A stretch of 64,000 bases of DNA from Geosiphon pyriformis uo1 (taxonomy: Eukaryota > Fungi > Glomeromycota): NCBI GenBank assembly GCA_016748015.1, contig JAAOMT010000227.1:245239-309238 (forward strand), written 5' to 3'. Of the stretch, positions 1-48,499 are shown in pieces. A program made the translations under genes and the position numbers. The notes under the pieces were generated by a model. That model searched no databases, was not told the DNA's origin, and was given only the letters and a program-made list of their open reading frames with translations. Every line of letters begins with the position of its first letter. The stretch's first letter is position 1.

Positions 1-16
1 TTACTGGCACTGTAAA

Positions 17-15990: not shown

Positions 15991-18900
15991 CTATTTAAGT
16001 CTTCTGGTTACTCCAGAAAGTGCCTCACCCAACAACTGGGAACCCAAACAGAAGCAACTGCTTACCAATATTCTGCCAGCCATTGTCATGGAAGACGAGT
16101 CTCTAGCAGCTATATTTTCTTTTGAAATCAAGGAACTGACAGAAACTCCTTTGTTCAGTGAAGCTGCACTTGAAGAAAAACCTATTACAGTGATATACAC
16201 GGATGCCAAAATTGATAATCAGTCTATCAAACTGATCCTAGATAGTGGATTAGCTAGCAGCATCATTACAAGACAGCTCATGGACCAATTAGATTGCTGA
16301 GTTGATCAAGCTGCCAATGCAAGGATAATTACTGCTGATGGAGCCACCAAGACACCAATTGGTAAAATAGATGCCCTACCCATTAAAGTCAATGGCATTA
16401 TTATACTGATCAAGGTATTAGTCATGGAAGCCACTCAGTACTAAGCACTCATTGGCAACAATTGGCTGTCCAAAACCCATGTAATACTCAATTGGAACAT
16501 TCAAGAGCTTCAGTTTAGTCAAAATGGTTAATACACACATGTACCAGTCACATGTGGCCATTTCAAACCCATCACCACACCATCAGCACCACTCATCAAG
16601 TTTAAAGAAGAAAAAGAGAAACCTACTTGGGAAGTATACCAAGTCTCTTTGGCTGATGAAGACCACAATAAGTTGCCGCTAATACTCTCCTGAGATAACA
16701 ATAACAAAAAAAAGCAGGAGGAAGAACTTACCTGGAATATTGACCAAGCCTGAGAAACTGATAATGACCAAGACAAATCAGCACACTGGGAGTGGAAAGA
16801 AATGGACAAGGGAAAGGGAAAGGAGAAGAAAAAAGAAACTACCCCTACCAGCAGCACTTATAGTTTATACGCTTATACCTCATTACAACCACCCAATTAT
16901 TGTCAACCAAAATTAAAATGTGTCAATTGTGGCAAAAGATTGTCATCAATGAGCACTTGCTGTGGCAATGATAAAGAATATGCCATGGTCACAAAATTTT
17001 ATTGCCATCCATGCATTATAAAACACTTTGGATGACCAAAATGACAAGGAAAGTGGGATAATTAATTCTGTTTCACATGTGGAACTATCTTACCAAACGA
17101 AGAAATGTGGAATGACATTCCTGGGCACAGAGGAATATGCGACAAGACATGCCAGTACACTATCTTGATAAACAACTGAGTAAGCAAAAGAACACCAATT
17201 GACGACACCTGGAAAAGAGCATTGCAACAATTAGAAAGATACCTCCATGACGAACATGAACTCTGAAGAATGGCATATGCAAAAGCAGAAGGTGTGACCA
17301 TCAGCAAACTACTGGAAATCAAAAACAATCCTCTATCTCTTCCTGAACCCAAATATGTTCAAACTNNNNNNNNNNNNNNNNNNNNCCCGTATATCAACTT
17401 CCAGTTTATCCACCACAGCCACTGATAATATATCAACTGCCACAGCCACAAATAATTTATCAAACACCCGCAGTTCAAACACCACCATCAAATCCAGCTC
17501 AAATAACATCAGAGAACCCTAGATCAAGAGTCATCTAAAACTGGAGATCAGTAATGGTTGTTCACCAACTGATTCTTAGTTCACCCAACCAGCCATTCGG
17601 ATTACAACAGCAGAGTTCAGGAACTAGGTACACGTAAAACCCAAGTTCCCAGAACTATTTAAGTCTTCTGGTTACTCCAGAAAGTGCCTCACCCAACAAC
17701 TGGGAACCCAAACAGAAGCAACTGCTTACCAATATTCTGCCAGCCATTGTCATGGAAGACGAGTCTCTAGCAGCTATATTTTCTTTTGAAATCAAGGAAC
17801 TGACAGAAACTCCTTTGTTCAGTGAAGCTGCACTTGAAGAAAAACCTATTACAGTGATATACACGGATGCCAAAATTGATAATCAGTCTATCAAACTGAT
17901 CCTAGATAGTGGATTAGCTAGCAGCATCATTACAAGACAGCTCATGGACCAATTAGATTGCTGAGTTGATCAAGCTGCCAATGCAAGGATAATTACTGCT
18001 GATGGAGCCACCAAGACACCAATTGGTAAAATAGATGCCCTACCCATTAAAGTCAATGGCATTATTATACTGATCAAGGTATTAGTCATGGAAGCCACTC
18101 AGTACTAAGCACTCATTGGCAACAATTGGCTGTCCAAAACCCATGTAATACTCAATTGGAACATTCAAGAGCTTCAGTTTAGTCAAAATGGTTAATACAC
18201 ACATGTACCAGTCACATGTGGCCATTTCAAACCCATCACCACACCATCAGCACCACTCATCAAGTTTAAAGAAGAAAAAGAGAAACCTACTTGGGAAGTA
18301 TACCAAGTCTCTTTGGCTGATGAAGACCACAATAAGTTGCCGCTAATACTCTCCTGAGATAACAATAACAAAAAAAAGCAGGAGGAAGAACTTACCTGGA
18401 ATATTGACCAAGCCTGAGAAACTGATAATGACCAAGACAAATCAGCACACTGGGAGTGGAAAGAAATGGACAAGGGAAAGGGAAAGGAGAAGAAAAAAGA
18501 AACTACCCCTACCAGCAGCACTTATAGTTTATACGCTTATACCTCATTACAACCACCCAATTATTGTCAACCAAAATTAAAATGTGTCAATTGTGGCAAA
18601 AGATTGTCATCAATGAGCACTTGCTGTGGCAATGATAAAGAATATGCCATGGTCACAAAATTTTATTGCCATCCATGCATTATAAAACACTTTGGATGAC
18701 CAAAATGACAAGGAAAGTGGGATAATTAATTCTGTTTCACATGTGGAACTATCTTACCAAACGAAGAAATGTGGAATGACATTCCTGGGCACAGAGGAAT
18801 ATGCGACAAGACATGCCAGTACACTATCTTGATAAACAACTGAGTAAGCAAAAGAACACCAATTGACGACACCTGGAAAAGAGCATTGCAACAATTAGAA

Positions 18901-19029
18901 AGATACCTCCATGACGAACATGAACTCTGAAGAATGGCATATGCAAAAGCAGAAGGTGTGACCATCAGCAAACTACTGGAAATCAAAAACAATCCTCTAT
19001 CTCTTCCTGAACCCAAATATGTTCAAACT
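15722..19029. other. Assembly artefact: 15722-17365 repeated at 17386-19029 across a 20-N gap
   Basis: Identical ORFs offset by 1664 bp; N run at 17366-17385. Confidence 0.9.
16088..16560 (+). pseudogene. Aspartic protease of element E
   Basis: LILDSGLASSII, ALIGNNWL; same frame as gag. Confidence 0.85.
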
Positions 19030-19462
19030 TTTGACATCTTTGGCAACATCAAGAATGACTCAAAGGAATTTCACAAACATTACCAGCAATTAGCACCCAC
19101 TAGAGAAGAACAGAAACACCCAATTATGTGACCACTGTTTGATTCCATGTAATTTCTAGTATTGTAATGAGTGTGACCTCATTTACAATCCACCACCACG
19201 CATGATCTATACAATCTCAGAAGAAGACAAACCAATGAGCAACTGCACATTAGAATTGGAATCAGTTTTTAATTCTGATTCAAACTCTAATAATGACGAT
19301 AACAAAAACACTGGTTTTAGCTCTGCTCAATATGGCAACAAAAGTTTCAATGATTCAGACTCTGATTCAAATTTGGAAATATACATTGTGCTTCCTGATC
19401 TCTTTAAGGAACAAAAACTCAAATAATATAGTGATAATAATGAAGATATCATATCTGAATGC

Positions 19463-19850
19463 ATGCATGATACTGATACAGAATTTGATCTGAGATATTC
19501 AAGAAAAGATGCCATCAAAGTGGAACCAAATTCACACACATGTATTGATCTCAAAATAGCTCTGGAAATTTTAGCAACAACCATGGTTCAATTAGTATCT
19601 AAAAATAGCCTAGTGAAAAAAGAAATCAACATTAGAGGAGGAATAATTAATGCAGAGTATGTAGAAAATATCATTGCTATGCTACAAAATGACTCGGAAA
19701 AGACTTATACTATAGAACCAAATGAAAAGATAACACAAACAATATTTCTACTTTTGGTAAAAATAGCTTAGTTAGTTTCAGTGAGAAATAGAGAAGAATT
19801 AGGGATTACTGCTAGAGGGATACAGGGATTTGGATTAATGAGTAGAATAG
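19463..19850 (+). pseudogene. dUTPase domain of element E
   Basis: TEFDL, SKNSLV, GGIINAEY, EKITQ, RGIQGFG. Confidence 0.88.
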
Positions 19851-20259
19851 ATATACCAGTTAATATGACAGAAAAAGAGGTTATTGACAAAGGAGAAATT
19901 ATCTCAACCTGTCAATCAATCTCCATTTTACTATATAACCAGTATATGTTAACCATAAAAAGAGAAATAAGCTCAATTGTTTGAAGCAGAAGCCACTATT
20001 TGCGAATTAGAAGAGATTGGACTTACTAATCTCTATATCAGCCAAAAGCCTCAAAAATATCAAAATTCCTATCTACAACACAATAGAAAGTGTTATTGAA
20101 ATACTAAAAAAAACCATTATTGGATATTTAACCACCGAAGTTGAGGATCAACCACCAAACCAAATTCCAGATTTTCCACAGCTTTGTGAATATGTGGACA
20201 TCACATTACAAACTATTTATGGATGAAGCAAATGTTATCTGCTCCAACCAAAACAATTG

Positions 20260-21666
20260 GAACAGATAAACATGAGGAATCTAGACCCACTCCAACAGAT
20301 GCAACTAAAGATGTTAGCCAACAAATTCAATAACATCTTTGCCAGTGAAAATAAATTTGGCAGAACCAACATAATCCAGCATTAGATTAAAACTGGAGAT
20401 GCAATGCTAATTAAACAAAGAGCATACAGAGTACTACCAGCTAGCCATGAGATCATTTGTTAAGAAATTAACCAAATGCTTGACAATGGGCTAATTCAGC
20501 CATCAATGAGTTCATGGTCGTCACCAGTGGTACTAGTCCAGAAGAAAAATGGAAAAATCCACTTTTGTGTAGACTACTGGAAACTGAATGGAGTAACAAA
20601 GAGTGATAGCTATCCAACTCCAAAGATCCAAGAACTATTCGACGCTTTTGGGGGAAATAAATGGTTCTCAACACTAGATTTAGATAGTGGTTACTGACAA
20701 GTAGCCATGAACCTAGTTGACAAAGAAAAAACAGCATTTACCACAAGAAAGGGAAATTTTGAGTTTGAAGTCATGCTATTTGAATTGATGAATGCTCCAG
20801 CAACATTCCAACAGCTCATGAAAATTGTCTATACTGGATTACTATGGAAATCAGTAGTCATATACTTGGATGACACCAATGTGTTCTCAAAAACATTCAA
20901 TGATCATCTGCATCATCTCCAACAAGTGTTTAAAAGATTAAAAAGAGCCAAACTAAAGCTAAATGCAACCAAATATTTCTTTGGAAAAACTGAACTCAAG
21001 TTTTTGGAACATGTGGTGAGCAAAGATGGAATCAAAATGGATACAGATAAGATTGCAATAGTAAAGAACTTTTCAGTACCAGCAAACTTGTCAGAACTAA
21101 GAGCATTTTTGGAATTTGCAGGCTATTATCGACATTTTATCAAGGATTTTTCTAAACTAGTCCAGCCACTTTACCATCTACAAACCAAGAATGTGAAGTA
21201 TGAATAGACTGAAGCTCAACAAAAGGTGTTTGACACACTAAGAAGAAAGCTTATTCAAGCTCCAGTATTAATGTATTCAGATCACAGCAAACCATTTATC
21301 ATTACTATGAATGCATCAGGTCAAGCATTGGGAGCAGTACTATCACAGAAAAGACCAGATAGAAGAGAACATTCAGTAGCTTATGCCAGTAGAAGCTTAA
21401 GTCTAGCCAAAAAGAACTATGGAACACTAGCACTAGAACATTTAGCAATCTATTGAGCAGTCATAAAATAGAGAGAATACTTGAGCCAAAAGTTTGAAAT
21501 ATATATGGATCACAAGGGATTGACTTCAATCCAAAAACAAAAATTTGCAGACAACCATTATGTCAGATGGAAAATAGAACTTTCACCATTCAATTATACA
21601 GTACATTATAAAAAAAGAAAAGACAATGGAAATACTGATGGATTGTCGTAAATGAGACAAATCTAA
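20260..21666 (+). pseudogene. RT-RNase H of element E
   Basis: SSWSSPVVLV, FCVDY, LDLDSGY, YLDD, YASRSLS; TAA at 21664. Confidence 0.92.
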
Positions 21667-35085: not shown

Positions 35086-35762
35086 TATTATGAATTGGAG
35101 TAACAAGTTAATAGATAGCAAGAGAAAACAAGATTGTAGGATGATAAAAAGAATCAAAGAGAATTTAACTTTAAAGAGTATGAATTTAATATGCGAGATC
35201 AGTTTCATAAAATATTTCAATTGCTATACTTTTTAAAAAATAACTAGGAAATCTGAAGGTAGAAAAATAGTCTATATTGTCAACAAATGATTACATACTG
35301 GTATAATTCTATGTTTTATATTGACATTCTTAAAATTCAATATCAGATATCAAATGTACTCTTCAGTCATGTTTTATTCAATAATCTTCAAATGCTACAA
35401 TTATTTAAATTAGGAAAAAGATAGATAAATACCAACAAGTAATCTTTTATCCCAAGATGTTCAAATACTTGAAGGTAAAAAAAGAAAAATTAGTAAAAAG
35501 AGAAGGATTGAGATAAAGTTGTTATTTTATTTCTTTGATTTCTTTGATTTTTATATGCTTTTTTATAACTAAGAGATTCATCACTTATATAACTATCAAA
35601 AATGGTCAATAATCAGGTTAATAACTAAGTCAATGATTAGGTTAATAGTCAGGTCATTGATTAGGTCAATAATTACTATCTAAAAATAGGGTGGCTAATT
35701 ATATAACATCAATGACTAATACATATAATAACTAATAAAAAGTATAAATTTCAATTATAACA
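35086..35762 (-). repeat. 5' LTR of element C
   Basis: Aligns to 5730-6430; PBS TGGTGCTTCCTGTAAGG at 35079-35063. Confidence 0.88.
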
Positions 35763-35769
35763 ATATAAT

Positions 35770-38700
35770 TATTGTTTAAAAGTTGTTTTTTGGTTATAAT
35801 TTTTGGTTTGTATACTTATATTATTTTGAAAAAAAGTTGGTTTAAGCTTATAGCATTAATTTAATATTAATTATAACTGTAAAGAATAATATATTTGTAA
35901 TTTTTAGTAGTAATTTTAATAAAAACAACTCTAATTATTGTGTAAGTTTCAAAAAAAAATTGGATTTAAATTTGTTTAACTCTTTTAGCAGTTTTTTTTA
36001 GCAAATACTCTATGTAATCCAATTTTAAAAGGATTATAAAATATATTAACATTGTTTTAGTTAATAATAGTTTTTGTAATTTGAATTTTAACTAGTCTGC
36101 TTATTAATTATATAAGTTTTTTAATACTAATTATTTTGTTATTTTTATAAATGTTAATTCAGAAAGTTTTTTTAATTTTTAGCTTAATTTTATATAAAAA
36201 CAAGCCAATAGAAACAAATAAAAATACAAAATTTATGGTATTAATATAAATATTTAGGAAAAATTTGGTGGTTTGTTTTTAATAAATACAAAATTATTAA
36301 TAATTTCAATAGAAAATAGAGATTATTTATTTAAATAATACATTCTGTAATTAATATTACACTCTTAAAAATATAATATTAAAGTAAAAAAATGATTAAA
36401 AATTTTATATCTTTTAAATTTTTAAGATTTTAAAAAATTTTAAGTCTGATAACTTAGAAAATTTTCAGATTTTGTTGAACAAATAAATTAAACTAAATCT
36501 AAGTTGAGCTGTAAAATTTAAAGATTTATTTAATATTGGTTTTAGTAAATTAAATATAAAATAAATATTAATTCAATTTAAAAAAATTTACAGATTTTAT
36601 AAGATGTTAAAAGCCAATTTTACTAAAAATAATGATATTAAAATTTTTATTACCAAACACATAAAAGCTTTATTAACAATAAAAAACAAATAATTAAAAA
36701 TATACTAGAAAAATTTTTTTAGAAAAATTATATTAAATAATTTAATTAATAATAATAAATTGATTTTAAAGCTTAATTTTATTAAAAACAAAATAAATTC
36801 AATTATAAAAAACTGAACCAGAAAATACATTGTCAAAAATATTGTTTTTTTTCTTAATTGTAATAGTTTGTTTTACTTAATCATATTAACAATAATACAT
36901 TTTTTAATATTATGAAAAAGATTGGTTTAGATAAATATTTACTGGTTATTAATAAGTTTTTTTTGATAGTAAAGCTGTGAATTTGTCTAAGCTATTTAAT
37001 AAAATATAAAAATATTGTAAAAGTTTTATGTTAAATCTCTTTTAAGTTTGTTTAATAAGTGTTTAAAAAAAAAATGGTTTTTAATATTTAAAAAAAATCT
37101 GAATATTAATAATTCCTAAGTCTAATGAATAAAAAAGCATTTTAATAAATACTAGACTTATTGTTTAAATAAAAACTATGAAAAAAATACTTTTCAAAAT
37201 TTTATTTAATTATATATTAAAAATTTATAATAAATTTAATGTCTTAAGAGAAAACAATTTTTTAGTTTTAAAAAACATATTTATTTAATTAATATTTAAG
37301 AATGTTTTAAAAAAAAACAAAAAAATTTGGTTGGTGCTTCAAAATATGTACAAAACATATAACTCTGTAAATTAAATATATTTGAAAAATAATTTAATAA
37401 TAATAAAAATATATAACAAATTTATTAAAATCTTTGAATATATATATAATAGATTTCAGTTTGTTTATTAAATATAAAATTTATGATGACTTAAATTAAA
37501 ATAAGATTTTTTTTCTTTTTTGTAAATAATTTTTTGCAACTTTTTTTTGTATAAAATAAAAAAACATGAATTTTTTTTAAATATTAGATTAATTCTAAGT
37601 TTATAATAAAAACTACTAAAATTAAATCTAATATAAATCTAATCTTGTTTATAGTTATTGGTATATTTGTTAATAGCATAATTAAAATTAATAATAATTA
37701 TACAATAATACAAAATATTTTAAATATTGCTAATAAGTTTTTTGAGATTAATAATATAGTAATCAATATCAGAATTAAAAATATTTTTATTAAATATAAA
37801 TAATTCTCTTATTTTAATTGTTAAATCTGATAAAACTTACCAATATTTAAGTATTTATTTGTTAACTAATAATTTTTTTGGCCTTAATTTGAAGAAAACA
37901 AATTTAGATATAAAGTTTTTTTTAATAGTTTTATAAAAAACCATTTTTGATAAACAGTTTTTATATTTGGTTTTAACTGTCTTATAACTTATTATTGATT
38001 ATAAAATTTATTTTAGGTTTGTCAACAAAAGTATTTATAAAAGATAAAATTATTTAATTAAAAAATTTTAAAGTTAAAGACTAATTTGTTCCAAAATTTT
38101 TCGAATAAGATTATATATTATTCATTTTTTTATAATTTAAAGTTTTTTAATTAGATTTAAATAAAAAAAGATGGTTTTAGTTATAAACTTTGTTAATGCT
38201 AATAAAATTTTTGACAGATTTTTCAAATATAAATTGTTTAATTTACAAGTTTTAAGTTAGATCTTTTAAAATCCATTTTAGTTTTTAATTAAATTGAAAA
38301 TCAATCTTTTAAACAACTTTTTGGTTAATATTACCAGAATTTTTTTGATTAATAAAGTTTTTTTGATAGTTTACATATTTAGTACATTCTATTTTAAATA
38401 TAATATTCTTGTTTTAGAAATTTTGAATTATATTAAATATTTTAGAATAGTTAAATCTCTTAAATATTCCAGCATAATTTTTGTTAATTAATTTCTGAAC
38501 AGTTATAAGAAATATTTTACTTAAAAAAACTTTTGTTATTAGAAATAGTTGAATCTCAAAAACTTTGTTTCTTTTTGGTTTTTATTAATTTTTAAGTTTA
38601 TTATTACTAGTTATCTGGCTAAAAATTATTTGTTATTTTTTTAATTATTTAAAATAAAAGTATTATATACAAAAATTTTTAATACAGTTTATTTTGGTTT

Positions 38701-40800
38701 AAAAAATATTTGTTTGCTTAAATTACAATTTTTACAGATAGTTTAATTAAAAAATTTAGTTTGTTTAATATAGTTAATAGTATGTTAACTTATTTTTCTA
38801 AATATAAATATAAATATAAAAATTCAAGATTTATTTTTTTTGACTTTAATTAAATTATAGATCATAATTTTAATTCTTAAATGTGTTTTAATATCTATTA
38901 AAGTTATAATTTACTTAGGCAACCAAACAATTTTAAATGTTTGTTAAATAAAATTGAATTTTATTGTGCTTAATTTTTGCAATAATTGCTAAGTAAAATA
39001 TTATTATATAAATAATATATTTAATAATAAAAATATTTTATTAAGATAATTAAAAATAAAGACATTTTGCTGTTTTTAATAATAAATATACTAATTAACT
39101 AGCAAAAATTAGATTATTTTTTCTGATTTAATATTATTGACTAATATTAAAAAATTTTTTTAAATACAAATAACAAAATTGTTTTTAATAATATATATTA
39201 CTTTATTAAATTTATAAATTATACAGTTTAATATATTTTGTAAAAAGTTAAATTTGGTTTTAATATTGTAAATTTTTATATATTAATAATATTAATTAAT
39301 ATTTTGCCATTTTGGTTTGGTATTTTAACTTATATATAATTATTAAATATATTAATATTATTATTATTAGTTTATACATATATATAATAAAAATTTTATA
39401 TAAAAAGTTGACTATTATAATTAAAAAAAGATTTATAACAAGTGCTATTAATTTTATTTATGAAATAAACCAGAAAAAATAAAATAAAAGAATATAATAA
39501 AAATAATTAATAATAGAATATAAAATTATTAAAGTATATAATATTAAAAATTCCAGAAATTTTAAAAATATCAACAAAAATACCAAAAATTTCAGAAATA
39601 TTAAGAATTTTAGCAATAATTCAAAAGAATTATAAGAATTTTAAAAATTTTGTATTATAAAAATTTATGTATATATAGCAAAAATATTAAAAACAAAAAA
39701 AACAAACAAGTTAAGTTTTATTTTATAAAATAATTTCTATAGTTAATAATTTAATACTTAAAATCTATAATTATTTTAAATAAAATTATCAATTATATAT
39801 ATATATATATATATTTTTTTTTATATAAACACAACTTTATGTATTTCAATTTATTTTATTAAATCTTAATTAATTTTATATTAATATTAATAATATATAA
39901 TATAATACTATTAATAATATTAAAACAATAATTTTTAATTATAATTATTAATAAAATATTAATTTTTATTATATTTTTTTCTTTTTGTTTTGTTTATATT
40001 TACTAATTAATTAAAAAAAAACACTAAAATTATAACATTAAAAATTGTTTATAAAAAATGTTAAGATAAAATATAGAATATAATTAAAAAAACTAAAATT
40101 GCTTATTAAAAAAGTAAAAAATACCAAAATAAACTGGTTATTATATTAAAAAAATTAGATATTAAGTATTATCTACTATTATATTAAATCTTTGTTTATT
40201 ATATAAAAAACTTTATTATTAAAATTTTTAAATTAACTAATTAATAAATATAAATACAAAGTATATATTATAACAATATGAAATTTTTTATTTATAGTTT
40301 TATATATAGCTTGAATTTTTGTATTTATAAAAAATTATTGTAAGTTTTAGAAGTCTTTAACTAATGTAAACTTGTTATTTTTTGCTGTATTTTAATTTTG
40401 TATTTAAGTGCCAATAATATTAACTTATATCTGGTTCTGAATAAAGGTTTTGTGTTTAAGTTTTGGCTGGCTAAAGCTAAAGCTGTTTTTGTAAATATAA
40501 ATTGGCCATTTTCTATTTAGTTGATTTTGTGTATAGTTTGGTCATAAGTTACAGAAATAAGATTTTTTTATCCAACTCAAAACTCCGAGTGGAATTGGAA
40601 AAATGTGATTTGTTGTATAATGTGAGATCAGTGCTAATTGTCATTTGATTGCCTTTTGAAAGAGATGGCTCATTTATTAGAAGTGGTAGTTCCAGAATTG
40701 GATATTTGTTTTTTACTAGTGCTAGCATGTAAATCTAGTTGTATAGTATTGTCTTGATCGGCTGAGTGGCTGGTCACATTTAATTTAGAACTCTATGTAG
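35770..40800 (+). mobile_element. Heavily AT-eroded non-LTR (LINE-like) retrotransposon
   Basis: Remnants GIFVNS (FVDD-like) at ~37660, ILNIANKFFEIN, YQYLSIYL, DKQFLYLV, and C-terminal NKGFVFKFW at ~40440; limits approximate. Confidence 0.55.
39452..40275 (+). repeat. Very eroded solo LTR of the D/F family within the LINE
   Basis: AATTCCAG-type U3 repeats, AATTTATGTATATATAGCA as in the F LTR, ends TATAACA. Confidence 0.5.
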
Positions 40801-41374
40801 TCATATTGTATTATATAGTGATTGGGCTACACTCGTAAATAATAAAGAAAAAAAACAAAAAAAACAAATAAAAAACACAAAACTGAAAATAAAAGTTTGG
40901 ATTAGAAATTAAAAATAAAGCAATAATAATCAGTCTTAAGCAACTTTTTATTTTTCTATCTATATTTGTAATTAAATTATTATTATTATTATTATTATGC
41001 TTTAACAAAGTGAGGTCCTTCCACAACCTACAAAACACACGTGTTCTACAATAGGCGCTTTCTGCACGTGACCAGTCACCTGGACTAAGCATTATCGAAA
41101 TATAAGAAACTGAAACTGAAACTGAAACCGAAGTAGCAACATATAATTAAATTAATATAGTTTTAATTAAAAATTATTAGTAAATTACTTATATCAAATA
41201 TTGAATAATTTATTAATTTAAAGTATTACACAAATTCAATATATTTTATTTAAGTAATTAAAATTAATCTTAATAATTTAATTAGATTTCTTGAACAAAC
41301 CTCAGATAACATTATTATTGTAAAATAAAAATTAAATGACTATCTATTGTAACATGACATAGGCCCAAGCCCAA

Positions 41375-43782
41375 TTAGACCTGCACTTTCGCTTTTTTCG
41401 GAGTTGGCATACACATATATAGATGGCACTGATTTTCGTTTCGAAATCGTTTTTGGAGCCCAGCCTCCTCAAGTGATTGGATCGTTGGACCTTTTGGTTG
41501 AACTGCCTTTATTGTCTCTCGCACCACAGCCTGTCATTCATAAATACTTTAGCTTTATACATTATAACTGATATTTTAGACAATCTTACCTTTGCATTCA
41601 GAATGGATGCCAAGATTGTTAGAACAGAAGGAAATTTTCCTGCCTTATCTGGCACTTCCATCGAATCACTACGTCGAACTCGACAAATATAACCTTTTGG
41701 CTTGTCCAGATATAACATCGTCATCATCAAACCTTAAATGTTGACAATTTAGTATTTTAATTAATATAAAACTTAAATGCATGAACAACATACCTCCATG
41801 AATAATGCCAACTGTTTGTATTCTGGAACATTTTTCTTCATCCCAATCCACCTTTTCCATCAATTTTATTACCATATCCTTTAGTATTTTAGGAAGCTTT
41901 AATCCTATTTCCCTAAGAAACTTTGTTCCATGACGATCTATGCAGTATCTTCCTGCTTCTCCAGCCCCATACTCATCTTTTTCACCACTACCAATGGATC
42001 TTAGAATCCAGTCACTCCTATGACCAATTTTCTGCCGTACTCCTTAAAGTCTTTTGTTATTTTTTCGAATGGCCGTTGCTATACTCGTACTTTCTCCCCT
42101 AATTATTTTTTTTAAACAAGTAAGAAAAAAAGTCATCAGATCTATTAAAGCAAGCAATTTAAAAACTTAATACCTGACTACTGATAGTCCTTCTACATTT
42201 GAAAAACATTGGTCAACAATTATGCTCCATATGTGACAATTAAACCAATTTTCAAGATTGGTTTCTTCTAGCTTTTTACTTTCAATTTCGCTAATCCTAT
42301 AAAGCAATTTTAGTTAAATTCTTATTGTAAGTTTTGCACAAAAATTACTTACAGAGCATGTAGAGCAAAACATATGTAGTCGACATCATGATGTTTTTCA
42401 TAGTTATAATCAGTACCAAAAGTTATCTCCTTTAAAATACTTCGGATCTCCTTTAATTCAGTCTATTACAAAAAAAAAACTTGAATACATATATATTTAT
42501 CATAATGCATAATGCATTAATAAATTTTCCAAGACAATCAATAACATCCTCTGCAAGCTGAGGTACTGGTGGGATATGTGTATGAATGATTTCATCAAGT
42601 TCTCCTTTGTTGAAATGCTGCTTAATCGCCTCATCATCAACATCTATGATGAATGAATGTGCGGCACTAATAAATAAAACTTGGTTTAGTTTTTATAATA
42701 AACCAAACTTAATTTCATGAATACTAACTGTTCATATTTTAATTTTTTTCCCAACGCATACAATTCCTCTTCGACGTATCTTCCACTTGATAACCTCCAC
42801 ATGCGTTTCTTTTTCATTAATTTGAATGTGTTTTGAATTTCTTGTTGATTTTTTTTATCGAGGCGAAATGGACCAGTCTACATTATAATACAGAAGCGAC
42901 AAGCAGTAATAGAAAGTATAAAAAAGTAATCAAATAAAATGAAAAGATAAAAAAAAATCAAAAACTGGAATCTGCAAAAATTACCTTGTTCTCCTTTATT
43001 AAGACTTCCTCTTCTTCGTCTTTTTCATCATCATCATTTTCTTTTTTGTTTTCTTTGTCTTCTTCGTCTTCCTCATCTTTTTCGTCTTCTTTATCTTTTT
43101 CGTCTTTTTTATCTTCTTCGTCTTCTTCATCTTCTTCGTCTTCTTTATCTTCTTTGTTATTTGCATAGTTCTGTATTTATTACAAAAAACAAATTAAGTT
43201 ATGTAACAATGAAGCTAACAGATTTGCGAAAAGATTGCTAACCTTTATGGTAGCAATTTCATCAGTATTTGGTTCTCTATGATTAAACTCATCTTTGCCA
43301 TCAAGTGAAAGGCGTGATCTTGCTAATTGTCTAAATGCAAATAGAATATTACTAAACCCAAAATTTAAGAGATTTGTATAAAAATAACTACTTACAATGA
43401 ATTTAAGTTTCGCTTTGTCCACGATCATCATTTTTTTATGAACTTCCATTTTTTCTTCTTGGGCGTGAAGATCCTTCCAAAAGTTTTCAGTTGATCTTGA
43501 GCAGAGACACCTGTTGAGATTACAAAGCAACTTTTGCACCTGGTATTTTAAATTTGTATCCTCAGCTGCAATGGAATCCAGGGCTTGACGTAAAACTTCT
43601 TCAGCTTTTGCTCTAGCTGAATAGGTAAACTGACCCATTTTGAAGAATTTCACTACAGTAAAATTCCCTTTGAGAAGCTCCCGAAGAATATCGATATATT
43701 TCTATTAACACGCAGAGTAAAAAGATAGTACTGTAAACAAAAAAAATTGCAAACAAAATGATTCAACACTAACCGATGACAT
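41375..43782 (-). pseudogene. Multi-exon gene for a PD-(D/E)XK-like nuclease protein (Crinkler-associated REase-like family), probably inactivated
   Basis: ATG at 43782, GT-AG introns, acidic exon; motifs WRLSSGRYVE, HSFIID, ENWF..IW..VDQCF, GESTS...RKN, SDWILR, EYGAGEAG, LKLPKILKDM; ends PTPKKAKVQV*. In-frame TAA at ~42047 and +1 nt at ~43309. Family assignment from memory. Confidence 0.65.
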
Positions 43783-43863
43783 AGTTTATTAATATCTGAA
43801 GCTCTTGTTTTTGAGAGATACGTGTAAGTAGTAAGTAAAAGAAAAAAATCATGAAAGTATATA

Positions 43864-44362
43864 GGTTGTCACATCAACACCAGGAAGGTCTGATGTAACT
43901 ACGTCAATAGCAACACACAAAGACAGCCATAGCATCCTTGGGCTTTACAGGCGTTAAGCATTAGGTTTGACACCAGAACCTTATAAAAGTATAAGATTGT
44001 TACATCAGCACCGGGAAGGTCTGATGTAACTACGTCAATGGCAACACACAAAGGCAGCCATAGCATCCTAGGGCTTTACAGGCATTGAGCATTAGGTTTG
44101 ACAGCAGAACCTTATAAAAGTATAAGATTGTTACATCAGCACCGGGAAGGTCTGATGTAACTACCTTAAGGGCAACACACAAAGGCAGCCATAGCATCCT
44201 TGGGCTTTACAGGCATTGAGCATTAGGTTTGAAACCAGAACCTTATAAAAGTATAAGATTGTCACATCAGCACCGGGAAGGTCTGATGTAACTATCTCAA
44301 TGGCAACACACAGAGGCAGCCGTAGTATTCTCGAGCACTAGGTTTGAAACCAGAGCCTATAC
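43864..44362 (+). repeat. 131-bp tandem array, ~3.8 units, each with an internal hairpin
   Basis: Units start at 43864, 43995, 44126 and 44257; GTTACATCAG-N12-CTGATGTAAC. Confidence 0.95.
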
Positions 44363-44794
44363 ATCTTTCGAAAGCTGATAAGCATCTATGAGACAACTTA
44401 CCATGTGAGTCAGAAGTTGAAAGCGACGCGAACGTGAAAAAAATGAAAAAGTGAGTATTTCATTTGGATGTAGTGCGCGACTATACTCTTTTGTTGATAT
44501 ATCAAAATCCATTGTTTTTATTAGCAGAATTTATACTGATAGATAAAAGATCTTCAGAATGGATCTTTTATCTATCAGTATAAATTTTGCTAATAAAAAA
44601 TGCTTGACTAGATAATGGATTTGAAATATCAACAAAAGAGTATAGTCGCGTCAGCCAGAGGCGACGTACACTACTACACATCCAAATGAAATTCTTATTT
44701 TTTCATTTTTTCATTTTTTTCACGTTCGCGTCGCTTTCAACTTCTGACTCACATGGTAAGTTGTCTCATAGATGCTTATCAGCTTTCGAAAGAT

Positions 44795-45293
44795 GTATAG
44801 GTTCTGGTTTCAAACCTAGTGCTCGAGAATACTACGGCTGCCTCTGTGTGTTGCCATTGAGATAGTTACATCAGACCTTTCTGGTGCTGATGTGACAATC
44901 TTATACTTTCATGAGGTTCTGGTTTCAAACCTAATGCTCACTGCCTGTAAAGCCCAAGGATGCTATGGCTGCCTTTGTGTGTTGCCCTTAAGGTAGTTAC
45001 ATCAGACCTTCCCGGTGCTGATGTAACAATCTTATACTTTTATAAGGTTCTGGTGTCAAACCTAATGCTCAATGCCTGTAAAGCCCTAGGATGCTATGGC
45101 TGCCTTTGTGTGTTGCCATTGACGTAGTTACATCAGACCTTCCCGGTGCTGATGTAACAATCTTATACTTTTATAAGGTTCTGGTGTCAACCCTAATGCT
45201 TAACGCCTGTAAAGCCCAAGGATGCTATGGCTGCCTTTGTGTGTTGCTATTGAAGTAGTTACATCAGACCTTCCTGGTGTTGATGTGACAACC
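44795..45293 (-). repeat. Mirror copy of the 131-bp array
   Basis: Reverse complement of 43864-44362 with the same unit order. Confidence 0.95.
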
Positions 45294-45373
45294 TTTACAC
45301 TTTCATGATTTTTTTCTTTTACTTACTACTTACACGTATCTCTCAAAACAAAAGCTTCAGATATTAATAAATT

Positions 45374-46415
45374 ATGTCATCGGTTAGTGTTGAATCATTT
45401 TGTTTGCAATTTTTTTTGTTTATAGTACTATCTTTTTACTCTGTGTGTTAATAGAAATATACCGATATTCTTCGGGAGATTTTCAAAGGGAATTTTACTG
45501 TGGTGAAATTCTTCAAAATGGGTCAGTTTACCTATTCAGCTAGAGCAAAAGCTGAAGAAGTTTTACGTCAAGCCCTGGATTCCATTGCAGCTGAGGATAC
45601 AAATTTAAAATACCAGGTGCAAAAGTTGCTTTGTAATCTCAACAGGTGTCTCTGTTCAAGATCAACTGAAAACTTTTGAAAGGATCTTCACGCCCAAGAA
45701 AAAATAAAGAAAGTGAGACAAAAAAGGAAGTTTATAAAAAAATGATGATCGTGGACAAAGCGAAACTTAAATTGATTGTAAGTAGTTATTTTATACATAT
45801 CTCTTAAATTTTGGGTTTAGTAATATTCTATTTGCATTTTAGATAATTAGCAAGATCACGCCTTCACTTGATGGCAAAGATGGGTTTAATCTTGGAGGAC
45901 CAAATAATGGTGAAATTGCTGTCATGAAGGTTAGCAATCTCTTTGGAAATCCGTTAGCTTCACTGTTACATAACTTAATCTGTTTTTTTTTAATAAATAC
46001 AGAACTATGCAAATAACAAAGAAGGTAAGGAAGATGATGAAAAAGATAAAGAAGACGAAAAAGATGAAGAAGACGAAAAAGATGAGGAAGACGAAGAAGA
46101 CAAAGAAAACAAAAAAGATAATGATGATGATGAAAAAGACGAAGAGAGGAAGTCTTAATAAAGGAGAACAAGGTAATTTTTGCAGATTCCAGTTTTTTTT
46201 GTTTTTTTATCTTTTCATTTTATTTGACTACTTTCTATTACTGTTTTTCGCTTCTGTATTTTAATGTAGACTGGTCCGTTTTGCCTCGATAAAAAAAATC
46301 AATAAGAAATCCAGAACACATTCAAATTAATGAAAAAGAAACGCATGTGGAGGTTATCAAGTTGAAGATGCGTCGAAGAGGAATTGTATACATTGGGAAA
46401 AAAATTAAAATATGA
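45374..46415 (+). pseudogene. Truncated inverted copy of the first five exons of the nuclease-like gene
   Basis: ATGTCATCG-GTTAG at 45374; TGG to TGA at ~45677; homology ends at 46415. Confidence 0.85.
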
Positions 46416-46463
46416 GAGGACTTTATGAAAATAATTTGCGGTAACTCGGGAAAGAATAATATT

Positions 46464-46990
46464 TTAATCAGAATTATACTCATTTGCTCCATAAACTCTA
46501 TTGAAATGCACAATATTCAATGAATTAACTTCTCTTGAAGATAAATGTGAAAGCCAAAAGCCCAAATTTACAATCCGATTCAATCCGAAAAGTCGCAAGC
46601 GATGCCCAGTCACCCTTTTTGGACATTGTCTACGAACCTCGGCCATTGTCTCTTCCTCATTTTGATACTTTGTAATGCGAAACCTTTCGGCAAAATTAGA
46701 CGCAAAGAAAACGGAACTAGAACTTAATAAATATTCTTTTGGAGTGTGACTATGGGAAGAGTTAGATGAGACTGATGAAGGGGTTTAAGATAATCAATGT
46801 GGATCGGTTCGGAGCCAACCGGAAAACAAAATTCGTCTTCTTCATCGACTACTTTAGTAATTATTGTCGGTTGATGATCATCTAATACGGATGTAAAAGG
46901 AGCTGGTTTCTGAAATAGCTCTGAATGTTCAAAAGTAAATATAGGCTGAAGAGTCGACACGACAAGAGGTATGCGCTTCTCTTTGACCTA
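46464..46990 (-). CDS. 3' exon(s) of an unidentified gene or pseudogene
   Basis: CpG-retaining sequence, ORFs 46724-46960 and 46464-46646, TAG acceptors at ~46988 and ~46717. Confidence 0.4.
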
Positions 46991-48499
46991 GATATATAAG
47001 ATGAACTTGGTAATACTCGCTCAAAATATCAAAACAAATCAGGTTAAACTGGCTGTTTTTATTTCAAAACATAAGAAATACAGAACTTAACAACTTAAAA
47101 AATCGGTTTTACGTATATAACAAAAGATTATGTATCTACAAAATAGAATTTATAAATTTTAAGTTTTATAAAATTTTAAATAAATTAGTTTAATATTATA
47201 TTTTGAGAAAAAAATTACACAATTGCTTAAACTACAAGAAAAAAACTCAAAATCTAATATTAAAAATTATTATATTTAGTATAATAGCTTTATAATTATT
47301 ATAAACGTTTTTTCTATTTTCAGATTTTTTTGGAAAAATTAACAACTGAGTTTTTGAAATTAATTATATTTATTGAAGTGTTCACTTATTTCATTAATTT
47401 TACATTGTTTTTAGTTTCTCGTTTATCTGTTATCTATTTGAACCAAAAATTAGCATAAGATTATTCTTATTATCTTATTATTTATATTAATTATTTTTGT
47501 CTTTTATTTTATCAATAACTCAATAGCAATTTACATATACAATTAAATATTATATTTAAGTCATGTATTATTTCAAACTACATAACAATAAATATTTTAA
47601 AAATTTGTCAAAAATTTTGCAAAAAATAATACTCAAAAAGTGCATTTTATAATAATTAAGAAGTTTAGATATTTTTAAAAAATACAATTTACTAATACAA
47701 ATCTCTTTTATTTAAAAATAAAATCAACAAAAATATTTTTTCAATATTTTCATTACACTATAAATTAATAACTAATATTAATGCAGTTAAAACTAATTTA
47801 ATTTAAATTTCTTAATCTTATAACAAAATTTTCAATAATTATATTAAGATAATTAAATAAACCAAAATTTTAAGGTTTTGTGTTTGGTTTAGGCAAATTT
47901 TTTTTAATTTGAAACAAAAATAAAATTTGTAATTTTGAGCAAAAGAAAAAAATCACTAAGTAATTTTTGTTGTTTCAATGGCATATTAAATGATCAAAAT
48001 TTTCATAAATAGTTACATTCAAAATCTTCTTTTCTTATGCTTGCTGTTTCGATGTCATGATTCTAAAGAATTCAAATGAAATAAATAATTAATTTCAAAA
48101 TAATTTCACAAATCAAAAAACTAAAAATAAGTACATTTACCTATTTTAAATTGCCAAATATTTACTTAATGGTTTCATATTACTGTGCACCCATCACAAA
48201 ATTATAATCAACGATAAAAAAATTAATAATATTGTAACTTTGCAGAGATAATTTGCTTTATTATTATTAAATAATAAGTTATAAGTCATAGAAATTTTTA
48301 AGTTACAATAAAGCTAGATAGTTTTTATAAAAAATATTTGTATTCAAATGAAAAAATTAATGAAAATTCACAAAAGGCAGCACTCATTCTTTCATTACCT
48401 CATTTCATTCAATCTTAGCATTTTTTGGAAAACATTGTTAATTATTAAAATATACTATAATATTTATTGTAGCAGGCCAGAAAGTATTGTTTGGTAAAA

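Follow-up and report, generated by a model that had tools for sequence, protein, structure and literature searches.

A diverged 3.7-kb palindrome at a nuclease-like gene of Geosiphon pyriformis: a probable fold-back-type inverted duplication

The window analysed here, i.e. a stretch of 64,000 nucleotides of the fungus Geosiphon pyriformis uo1 (GenBank assembly GCA_016748015.1, contig JAAOMT010000227.1, positions 245,239 to 309,238 of the forward strand), contains a ~3.7-kb palindrome whose arms carry the 5′ exons of a nuclease-like gene in opposite orientations. The locus is probably a fixed and fairly old fold-back-type inverted partial duplication, comprising the 5′ half of a host gene together with its promoter region. 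This is a known kind of rearrangement that gives a palindromic segmental duplication, and the locus does not reveal a new kind of element; the right copy is a dead fragment, and we found no evidence for a present function. A preliminary description of this DNA had offered three explanations: a hairpin-RNA locus silencing the nuclease family, the fused hairpin ends of a nuclease-carrying mobile element, or a fold-back repair scar. The last is favoured by four features of the locus: only one arm belongs to a full gene, the other being truncated; the spacer measures 9 nt; the centre of a paralogue points to a 2-nt inverted microhomology; and a foreign fragment lies at the outer junction.

Anatomy of the palindrome and its junctions

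In an inverted-repeat search, contiguous pieces (I1, I2, I5, I8, I9, I17, I23 and I25) tiled two arms at 42732-44552 and 44562-46415, recovering the ~1.8-kb arms and 9-nt separation given in the preliminary description. The innermost arm pair (44515-44552 and 44562-44599) is 38 nt long, 97% complementary, and enclosed the 9-nt gap TTCAGAATG (44553-44561), the putative loop of a fold-back hairpin. A global alignment of arm against arm gave 1715 matches and 95.8% identity over aligned bases, with 76 substitutions (52 of them transitions, a 2:1 bias) and 13 indel events totalling 93 bp. Given the length and similarity of the arms, the structure cannot be of chance origin. Two of the indels correspond to the extra right-arm bases previously reported at ~44601 and ~44651, and are 13 nt (~44600-44612) and 23 nt (~44651-44673) in the alignment.

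The left (parental) arm carries, on the minus strand, exons 1-5 of the gene, the upstream region and one 131-bp tandem array; its outer end runs into the rest of the gene. The right (copied) arm holds the same parts (upstream region, array, exons 1-5) in inverted orientation on the plus strand. As had been described for each arm, Tandem Repeats Finder placed one array of 3.6 units in the left (43854-44325) and one in the right (44832-45303), with mirrored unit order. The locus thus consists of adjacent inverted copies around a short single-copy spacer; one copy keeps its original flank (exons 6-12), whilst the other ends at a novel junction with sequence from elsewhere in the genome.

We searched the exons singly, and used the natural public proteins P0051, P0008 and P0023 rather than a joined spliced model. 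Leftward from the left arm, the minus strand holds a series of open exon-like stretches to ~41378, and the exon matches define an intact gene at 41375-43638 (minus strand) that is the public G. pyriformis model G9A89_015798 (P0051, 546 aa), with left-copy exons matching at 97.6-100%. The gene is intron-rich (>10 introns) and may have an additional first exon with an ATG at 43780-43782. Different lesions had been proposed for the two gene copies. This holds for the right copy, a truncated pseudogene (exons 2-5; 45518-46415, plus strand) with in-frame stops at 45677-45679 (TGA), 46303-46305 (TAA) and 46363-46365 (TGA) and a 17-nt indel at ~45705-45721; in the left copy, however, all conserved exons are open. 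Position 46415, the last of the right arm, falls inside exon 5, 4 nt short of the exon-5 donor; this exon has a stretch that is conserved in orthologues.

At the outer junction, homology to another part of the assembly (C639) begins exactly where the right arm ends, at 46416. The gene reads AAAATATGA|ACAGgttagt and the right arm AAAATATGA|GAGGACTTTATG..., the C639 copy running from GAGGAC on, and a single base (A) is common to both sides. The fragment (46416-47043, minus strand) is a copy of 0.63 kb of C639:508489-509160, and its frame is antisense to the right pseudogene. The copied piece is internal to a gene, in which a neighbouring exon has a weak CASTOR ACT-like match (21.5 bits versus a cut-off of 27). 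A template switch or a templated insertion would give a junction of this appearance. A transcript from the promoter of the right pseudogene could enter sequence antisense to the C639 gene.

Searches of the whole assembly (128.3 Mb, 792 contigs) found exon 2 only in both arms and on contig C545, and exons 1-4 were restricted to copies or fragments of the left gene. The exon-10 domain had 18 matches including the left gene (17 elsewhere); the arms themselves lack the nuclease-like domain (exons 8-12). The relative on C545 is older and broken (75-80% identity; 78-80% by BLAST with gaps, and ~12% of gap-free columns differ), with exons 2-3 at 18092-18767 (minus) and exons 8-12 at 20024-21085 (plus). 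Between these halves lie 1.26 kb (18768-20023), and exons 4-7 and the 131-bp array are missing. The intervening sequence has no other copy in the assembly, which is what loss of the distal flank at the palindrome locus would predict.

C545 provides an outgroup for the centre. It is identical to the left arm for 39 nt, through the spacer and a further GA (...GATCTTCAGAATGGA), after which its sequence is unrelated to the window. With C545 as a proxy for the sequence before rearrangement, the microhomology would be 2 nt (GA versus TC) and the loop 9 nt, the proxy being paralogous and 2 nt being weak. The centre reads ...GATC TTCAGAATG GATC..., exactly as priming from a fold-back would give. A perfect run as long as 39 nt is expected ~0.5 times per 700 nt at ~12% divergence. 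A conserved promoter element at the centre was considered and rejected; 2 mismatches in 49 nt is not significant at this divergence (Poisson ~0.06).

C545 also polarised the differences between the arms. The 23-nt and 13-nt segments are common to the right arm and C545 and are gone from the left arm; they therefore reflect deletions in the left arm rather than insertions in the right. Relative to C545, there were 16-17 derived substitutions in the left arm and 9-11 in the right.

The upstream region of C545 aligns with the arms but lacks a ~660-bp segment that bears the array. This segment (43806-44468, with its mirror at 44690-45350) is unique sequence in the assembly and is flanked by CTCT on both sides in the window, where C545 has a single CTCT. 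Either an insertion in the window or a microhomology-mediated deletion in C545 would account for it.

The Kimura two-parameter distance (K2P) varied along the arms. It was 0.069 +/- 0.010 in the outer arms, 0.023 +/- 0.005 in an inner tract of ~1 kb (43478-44452, partner 44704-45678) that includes the ~660-bp array segment absent from C545, and 0.086 +/- 0.031 in the 100 bp beside the centre (44453-44552). A tract of low divergence flanked on both sides by higher divergence is the pattern left by gene conversion between arms, and suggests such conversion in the inner tract. The same 100 bp beside the centre hold 4 of the 13 indel events, versus ~0.7 expected, leaving a near-perfect stem of 38 bp; this cluster would be compatible with erosion of the palindrome centre. 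For the C639 fragment, K2P was 0.033 +/- 0.007. This is roughly the amount that one neutral outer-arm lineage would accumulate; with constraint on the C639 gene, arms and fragment may date from a single event, or the fragment may have been added later.

The palindrome is an island of 31-37% G+C between very AT-rich stretches, in a window of AT-rich eukaryotic DNA that is rich in Gypsy-type debris; nearby genes are only Gypsy debris. Window positions 36000-40000 have only 12-14% G+C and are part of a repeat family that has dozens of members, at 70-92% identity. On the other side of the palindrome, 47246-48026 is an AT-rich repeat of ~0.75 kb with at least 8 copies on other contigs at 80-89% identity.

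Other partial copies of the gene region exist. C684:20563-21091 is a copy of window 42680-43237 (the exon 4-5 region) that adjoins a run of N, has a K2P of 0.023 to the left arm versus 0.066 to the right, and extends 52 nt past the arm boundary; it derives from the left gene as a later, partial copy. C704 has a related fragment of 134 nt at 85%. C545:26090-38120 is a ~91% collinear copy of window 35762-41572 (the 3′ flank and 3′ end of the gene) with a 6.6-kb insertion inside, and runs off the end of the 38-kb contig within the gene. No contig continuing this copy was found, and the assembly may therefore lack a second copy of the locus.

Origin of the palindrome

The events that we infer would begin with a break or stalled fork just upstream of the gene, leaving a 3′ end finishing ...GATCTTCAGAATGGA. 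The terminal GA would pair with the TC nine bases back, forming the 9-nt loop and priming synthesis on its own strand. Synthesis would then copy ~1.85 kb of its own locus backwards, through the upstream region, the 131-bp array and exons 1-5, until a template switch 4 nt before the exon-5 donor led to the C639 gene, of which ~0.63 kb would be copied prior to rejoining of the end. The right copy would subsequently have decayed (three stops and several indels), and the ~1-kb inner tract would have been homogenised between the arms through gene conversion. Deletions beside the centre would have interrupted the symmetry outside the innermost 38 bp, with a probable stabilising effect on the structure. 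If so, one locus displays the life of such a scar, from its 9-nt loop and second template switch to the decay of the copy, a conversion tract and the erosion of the centre by deletions. The assembly contains a SAE2 domain, and we therefore rejected lack of the hairpin-opening factor Sae2/CtIP, and with it a loss of hairpin processing, as the cause.

Several points weigh against a fold-back origin. The centre before rearrangement was taken from a paralogue (~12% gap-free divergence) and not from an orthologue. C545 is itself rearranged, its 5′ part being inverted relative to its 3′ part, and its coincident breakpoint may therefore stem from a separate, second event instead of showing the ancestral arrangement. 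A 2-nt microhomology is expected by chance in ~1/8 of junctions (PMC3907307). Finally, divergence is lower in the C639 fragment than in the outer arms, and the fragment may be a later addition.

Near-spacerless inverted chimeras are a recognised class of artefact, and one could arise during assembly or amplification from a missed adapter, from a chimeric fold-back read or through displacement amplification. However, a chimera copies a single template and would give identical arms, whereas the arms here have 76 differences with a 2:1 transition bias and 8-23-nt indels. Each arm also has its own derived changes relative to C545, and the right arm retains two ancestral segments lost from the left. 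The palindrome is therefore not such a chimera, as the preliminary description had argued for a fresh copying chimera on similar grounds, and an artefact is extremely improbable. The symmetry, the tandem arrays near the centre and the nuclease-fold gene might alternatively mark the junction of a mobile or linear hairpin-ended element (a foldback transposon, a long-terminal-inverted-repeat element or a concatemer of a hairpin-telomere replicon) carrying the gene and subterminal 131-bp repeats. The 131-bp unit contains a hairpin with a 10-bp stem (TTACATCAG...CTGATGTAA) and a TATA-like stretch, and a single unit folded better than all 200 shuffles (z -4.5). An assembly search for the unit and the centre, a check proposed in the preliminary description, found the hairpin core 8 times in 128 Mb, all within the palindrome (4 per arm, in mirrored order) and none outside it. 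The array and centre together matched only both arms, plus 46 nt of C545; the 39-nt centre motif occurs only here and in the C545 pseudogene, with shorter versions giving only scattered one-mismatch matches. Neither unit nor centre motif is a repeat family, so the element reading fails in this assembly: we found no set of several copies with common termini, subterminal repeats and target-site duplications, as a foldback or terminal-inverted-repeat transposon would have. The outer ends of the arms are also unlike, the left leading into exons 6-12 and the right lying against an unrelated gene fragment. The gene is of host type, with its >10 introns and relatives across Glomeromycotina and Endogonales, and the neighbouring genes are only Gypsy debris. 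Fused element ends, as once suggested, are thus very improbable. Helitron-type capture of the right arm and C639 fragment was likewise rejected, since the copy lies as a mirror image precisely at its source and the presumed 5′ end recurs nowhere else. Neither the junction nor the array core had a match in metagenome scans, and Rfam returned only sub-threshold look-alikes of miRNA precursors, on the central hairpin.

The palindrome might instead descend from an older and complete head-to-head pair of full gene copies that predated the C545/C686 duplication, was maintained by conversion, and then decayed differently at each locus, by truncation of the right copy here and by deletions initiated at the centre in C545. 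Such a pair would explain why C545 has a 5′ fragment (minus) and exons 8-12 (plus) flanking the same centre point, and the conversion-like tract between the arms is in keeping with it; palindrome centres are, moreover, recognised break sites. Yet it needs more events, C545 has no trace of a second arm past the GA and lacks the ~660-bp array segment common to both arms, and the divergence of the C639 fragment is compatible with the age of the outer arms. We consider an old pair unlikely. A different proposal concerns the present rather than the origin: whatever produced the palindrome, it might now be a hairpin-RNA locus, with double-stranded RNA processed to small RNAs that silence the gene or its family. 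In known hairpin-RNA loci, inverted gene or pseudogene duplicates give endogenous small RNAs, and both arms are transcribed from one promoter. The present locus resembles these in having an inverted partial duplicate of a coding gene beside its parent, with ~1.8 kb of near-complementary sequence covering exons 1-5, and the low divergence of the inner tract could mean maintenance. It differs, as far as the sequence alone can tell, in that the copies are head-to-head with divergent promoters. These would transcribe outwards, both in the sense direction, so the native promoters cannot yield a hairpin transcript, which would require read-through from outside. Moreover, exons 1-4 are unique to copies of this gene and the arms lack exons 8-12, leaving few targets beyond its own copies, and decay is evident in the arms, the outer part of which has diverged by 7%. 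A hairpin-RNA function is accordingly quite unlikely.

A further observation in favour of hairpin RNA comes from the paralogues. Local inverted partial duplications were found at 4 of 16 other family loci (L020:6427-7335, L022:2722-7376, L029:3599-7049 and L032:5264-7486). These include or abut parts of the gene, have arms of 260-730 bp at 92-99.5% identity and spacers of 0.4-2.1 kb, and are mutually non-homologous. Both L020 and L032 have their inverted copy on the downstream side of the gene, within reach of a read-through transcript that could pair with it. In L024, the closest paralogue of L032, the duplicated segment is present once only. We found no comparable inverted duplications in ~120 kb of other sequence, a control that is too small. 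The idea that local inverted partial duplication is a recurrent trait of this nuclease-fold family is tentative, and we hold it to be improbable. Were it true, either hairpin RNAs would silence the family or its putative nuclease activity would break DNA near its own genes, and the palindrome would belong, as a decaying example, to a class that is either functional or self-inflicted.

A gene family with a predicted nuclease-like fold

A word search with exon 10 gave only short fragments, the clusters of which held full-length proteins of Funneliformis caledonium and Rhizophagus diaphanus. A second search, with a full-length relative as query, returned 64 relatives in Glomeromycotina, Endogonales and one Mucorales. 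There are several copies per genome; the acidic N-terminal halves are variable and the C-terminal ~350 aa are conserved. In Rhizophagus clarus records, some members carry the label of a C2H2 zinc-finger factor.

The gene had been called nuclease-like, and this label stands at the level of predicted fold, with no sequence or profile match to a curated nuclease family. Neither the exons nor the full-length proteins P0008 and P0010 had a Pfam match, and there was no precomputed Pfam domain for P0051 or any other of the 64 relatives; NCBIfam gave no match for P0051 or P0023, and sequence and profile searches of the PDB found none for the family. An AlphaFold2 model of the natural orthologue P0023, from a 41-sequence alignment (A2), had a mean pLDDT of 74.7. 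Foldseek with this model found nothing in the PDB at E<=0.001. In an exhaustive VIA-align 2 search, two mitoribosomal chains ranked top, followed by the N-terminal nuclease domain of DrdV (Z 8.4, 142 aligned) and BpuSI (Z 7.4), with EcoRI (Z 5.7), HsdR, BbvCI, NgoMIV, SgrAI, NucC, D212 and further proteins of this fold lower in the ranking. The restriction-endonuclease-fold matches all span residues ~110-335 of P0023, and the model contains, with moderate support, the alpha-beta-beta-beta-alpha-beta core of the PD-(D/E)XK fold. The near-invariant residues D201, E214, E219 and K231 map to predicted strands 202-206 and 214-220 or to positions next to them, with a spacing that is not canonical (D/E)XK. 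Support for a nuclease-like protein is therefore moderate and confined to the predicted fold, with catalysis putative. The locus nonetheless flags an uncharacterised family with a predicted restriction-endonuclease-like fold that is widespread in arbuscular-mycorrhizal fungi and Endogonales.

Comparison with known inverted duplications

Fold-back inversions are mainly known from yeast mutants, tumours and human patients. To our knowledge, fixed natural fold-backs that can be read at single-base resolution with an unrearranged outgroup junction are less often described, and we found no fixed natural fold-back inversion from Glomeromycotina in the searchable literature. Palindromes of primate sex chromosomes are segmental duplications maintained by arm-to-arm gene conversion.

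Short-loop fold-backs in yeast have loops of <15 nt and stems down to 4 bp, and a secondary rearrangement always follows (PMC7467729). The Geosiphon palindrome shares several features with the fold-back inversions of Saccharomyces cerevisiae (PMC7467729; PMC10622511): the inverted copy abuts its template, the putative loop is <15 nt with a very short stem or microhomology, and the inverted segment terminates in what would be a secondary rearrangement or template switch to another locus. The yeast events are, however, fresh, chromosome-scale and selected in mutants, whereas the inverted segment here is 1.85 kb, interstitial, fixed in a wild fungus and several percent diverged, and its putative stem is 2 nt (at most 4) as judged from a paralogue.

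Junctions of human inverted duplications have 2-8 bp of inverted microhomology, 2 bp being commonest (PMC3907307), and by comparison with both data sets (PMC7467729; PMC3907307) the proposed 9-nt loop and 2-nt microhomology would fall within published ranges. The human constitutional events also resemble the present locus in the order of a parental and then an inverted copy, the short inverted microhomology and the loss of distal sequence, the last two being presumed here (PMC3907307). They differ in scale: human inverted duplications extend over kilobases to megabases, with terminal deletions and spacers of 766-70,466 bp (median 3.4 kb) (PMC3907307), compared with a 9-nt spacer and 1.8-kb arms in Geosiphon.

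A final likeness is to palindromic duplications maintained by conversion, of which mouse chromosome 12 offers another example (PMC13688818). Common to these and the present locus are inverted gene-bearing arms and a tract in which divergence between the arms is much lower, suggestive of conversion. Palindromes of that class have arms of tens of kb to Mb, intact genes on both arms and long spacers. In contrast, one of the two gene copies in the Geosiphon palindrome is a dead fragment, and the arms are diverging over most of their length.

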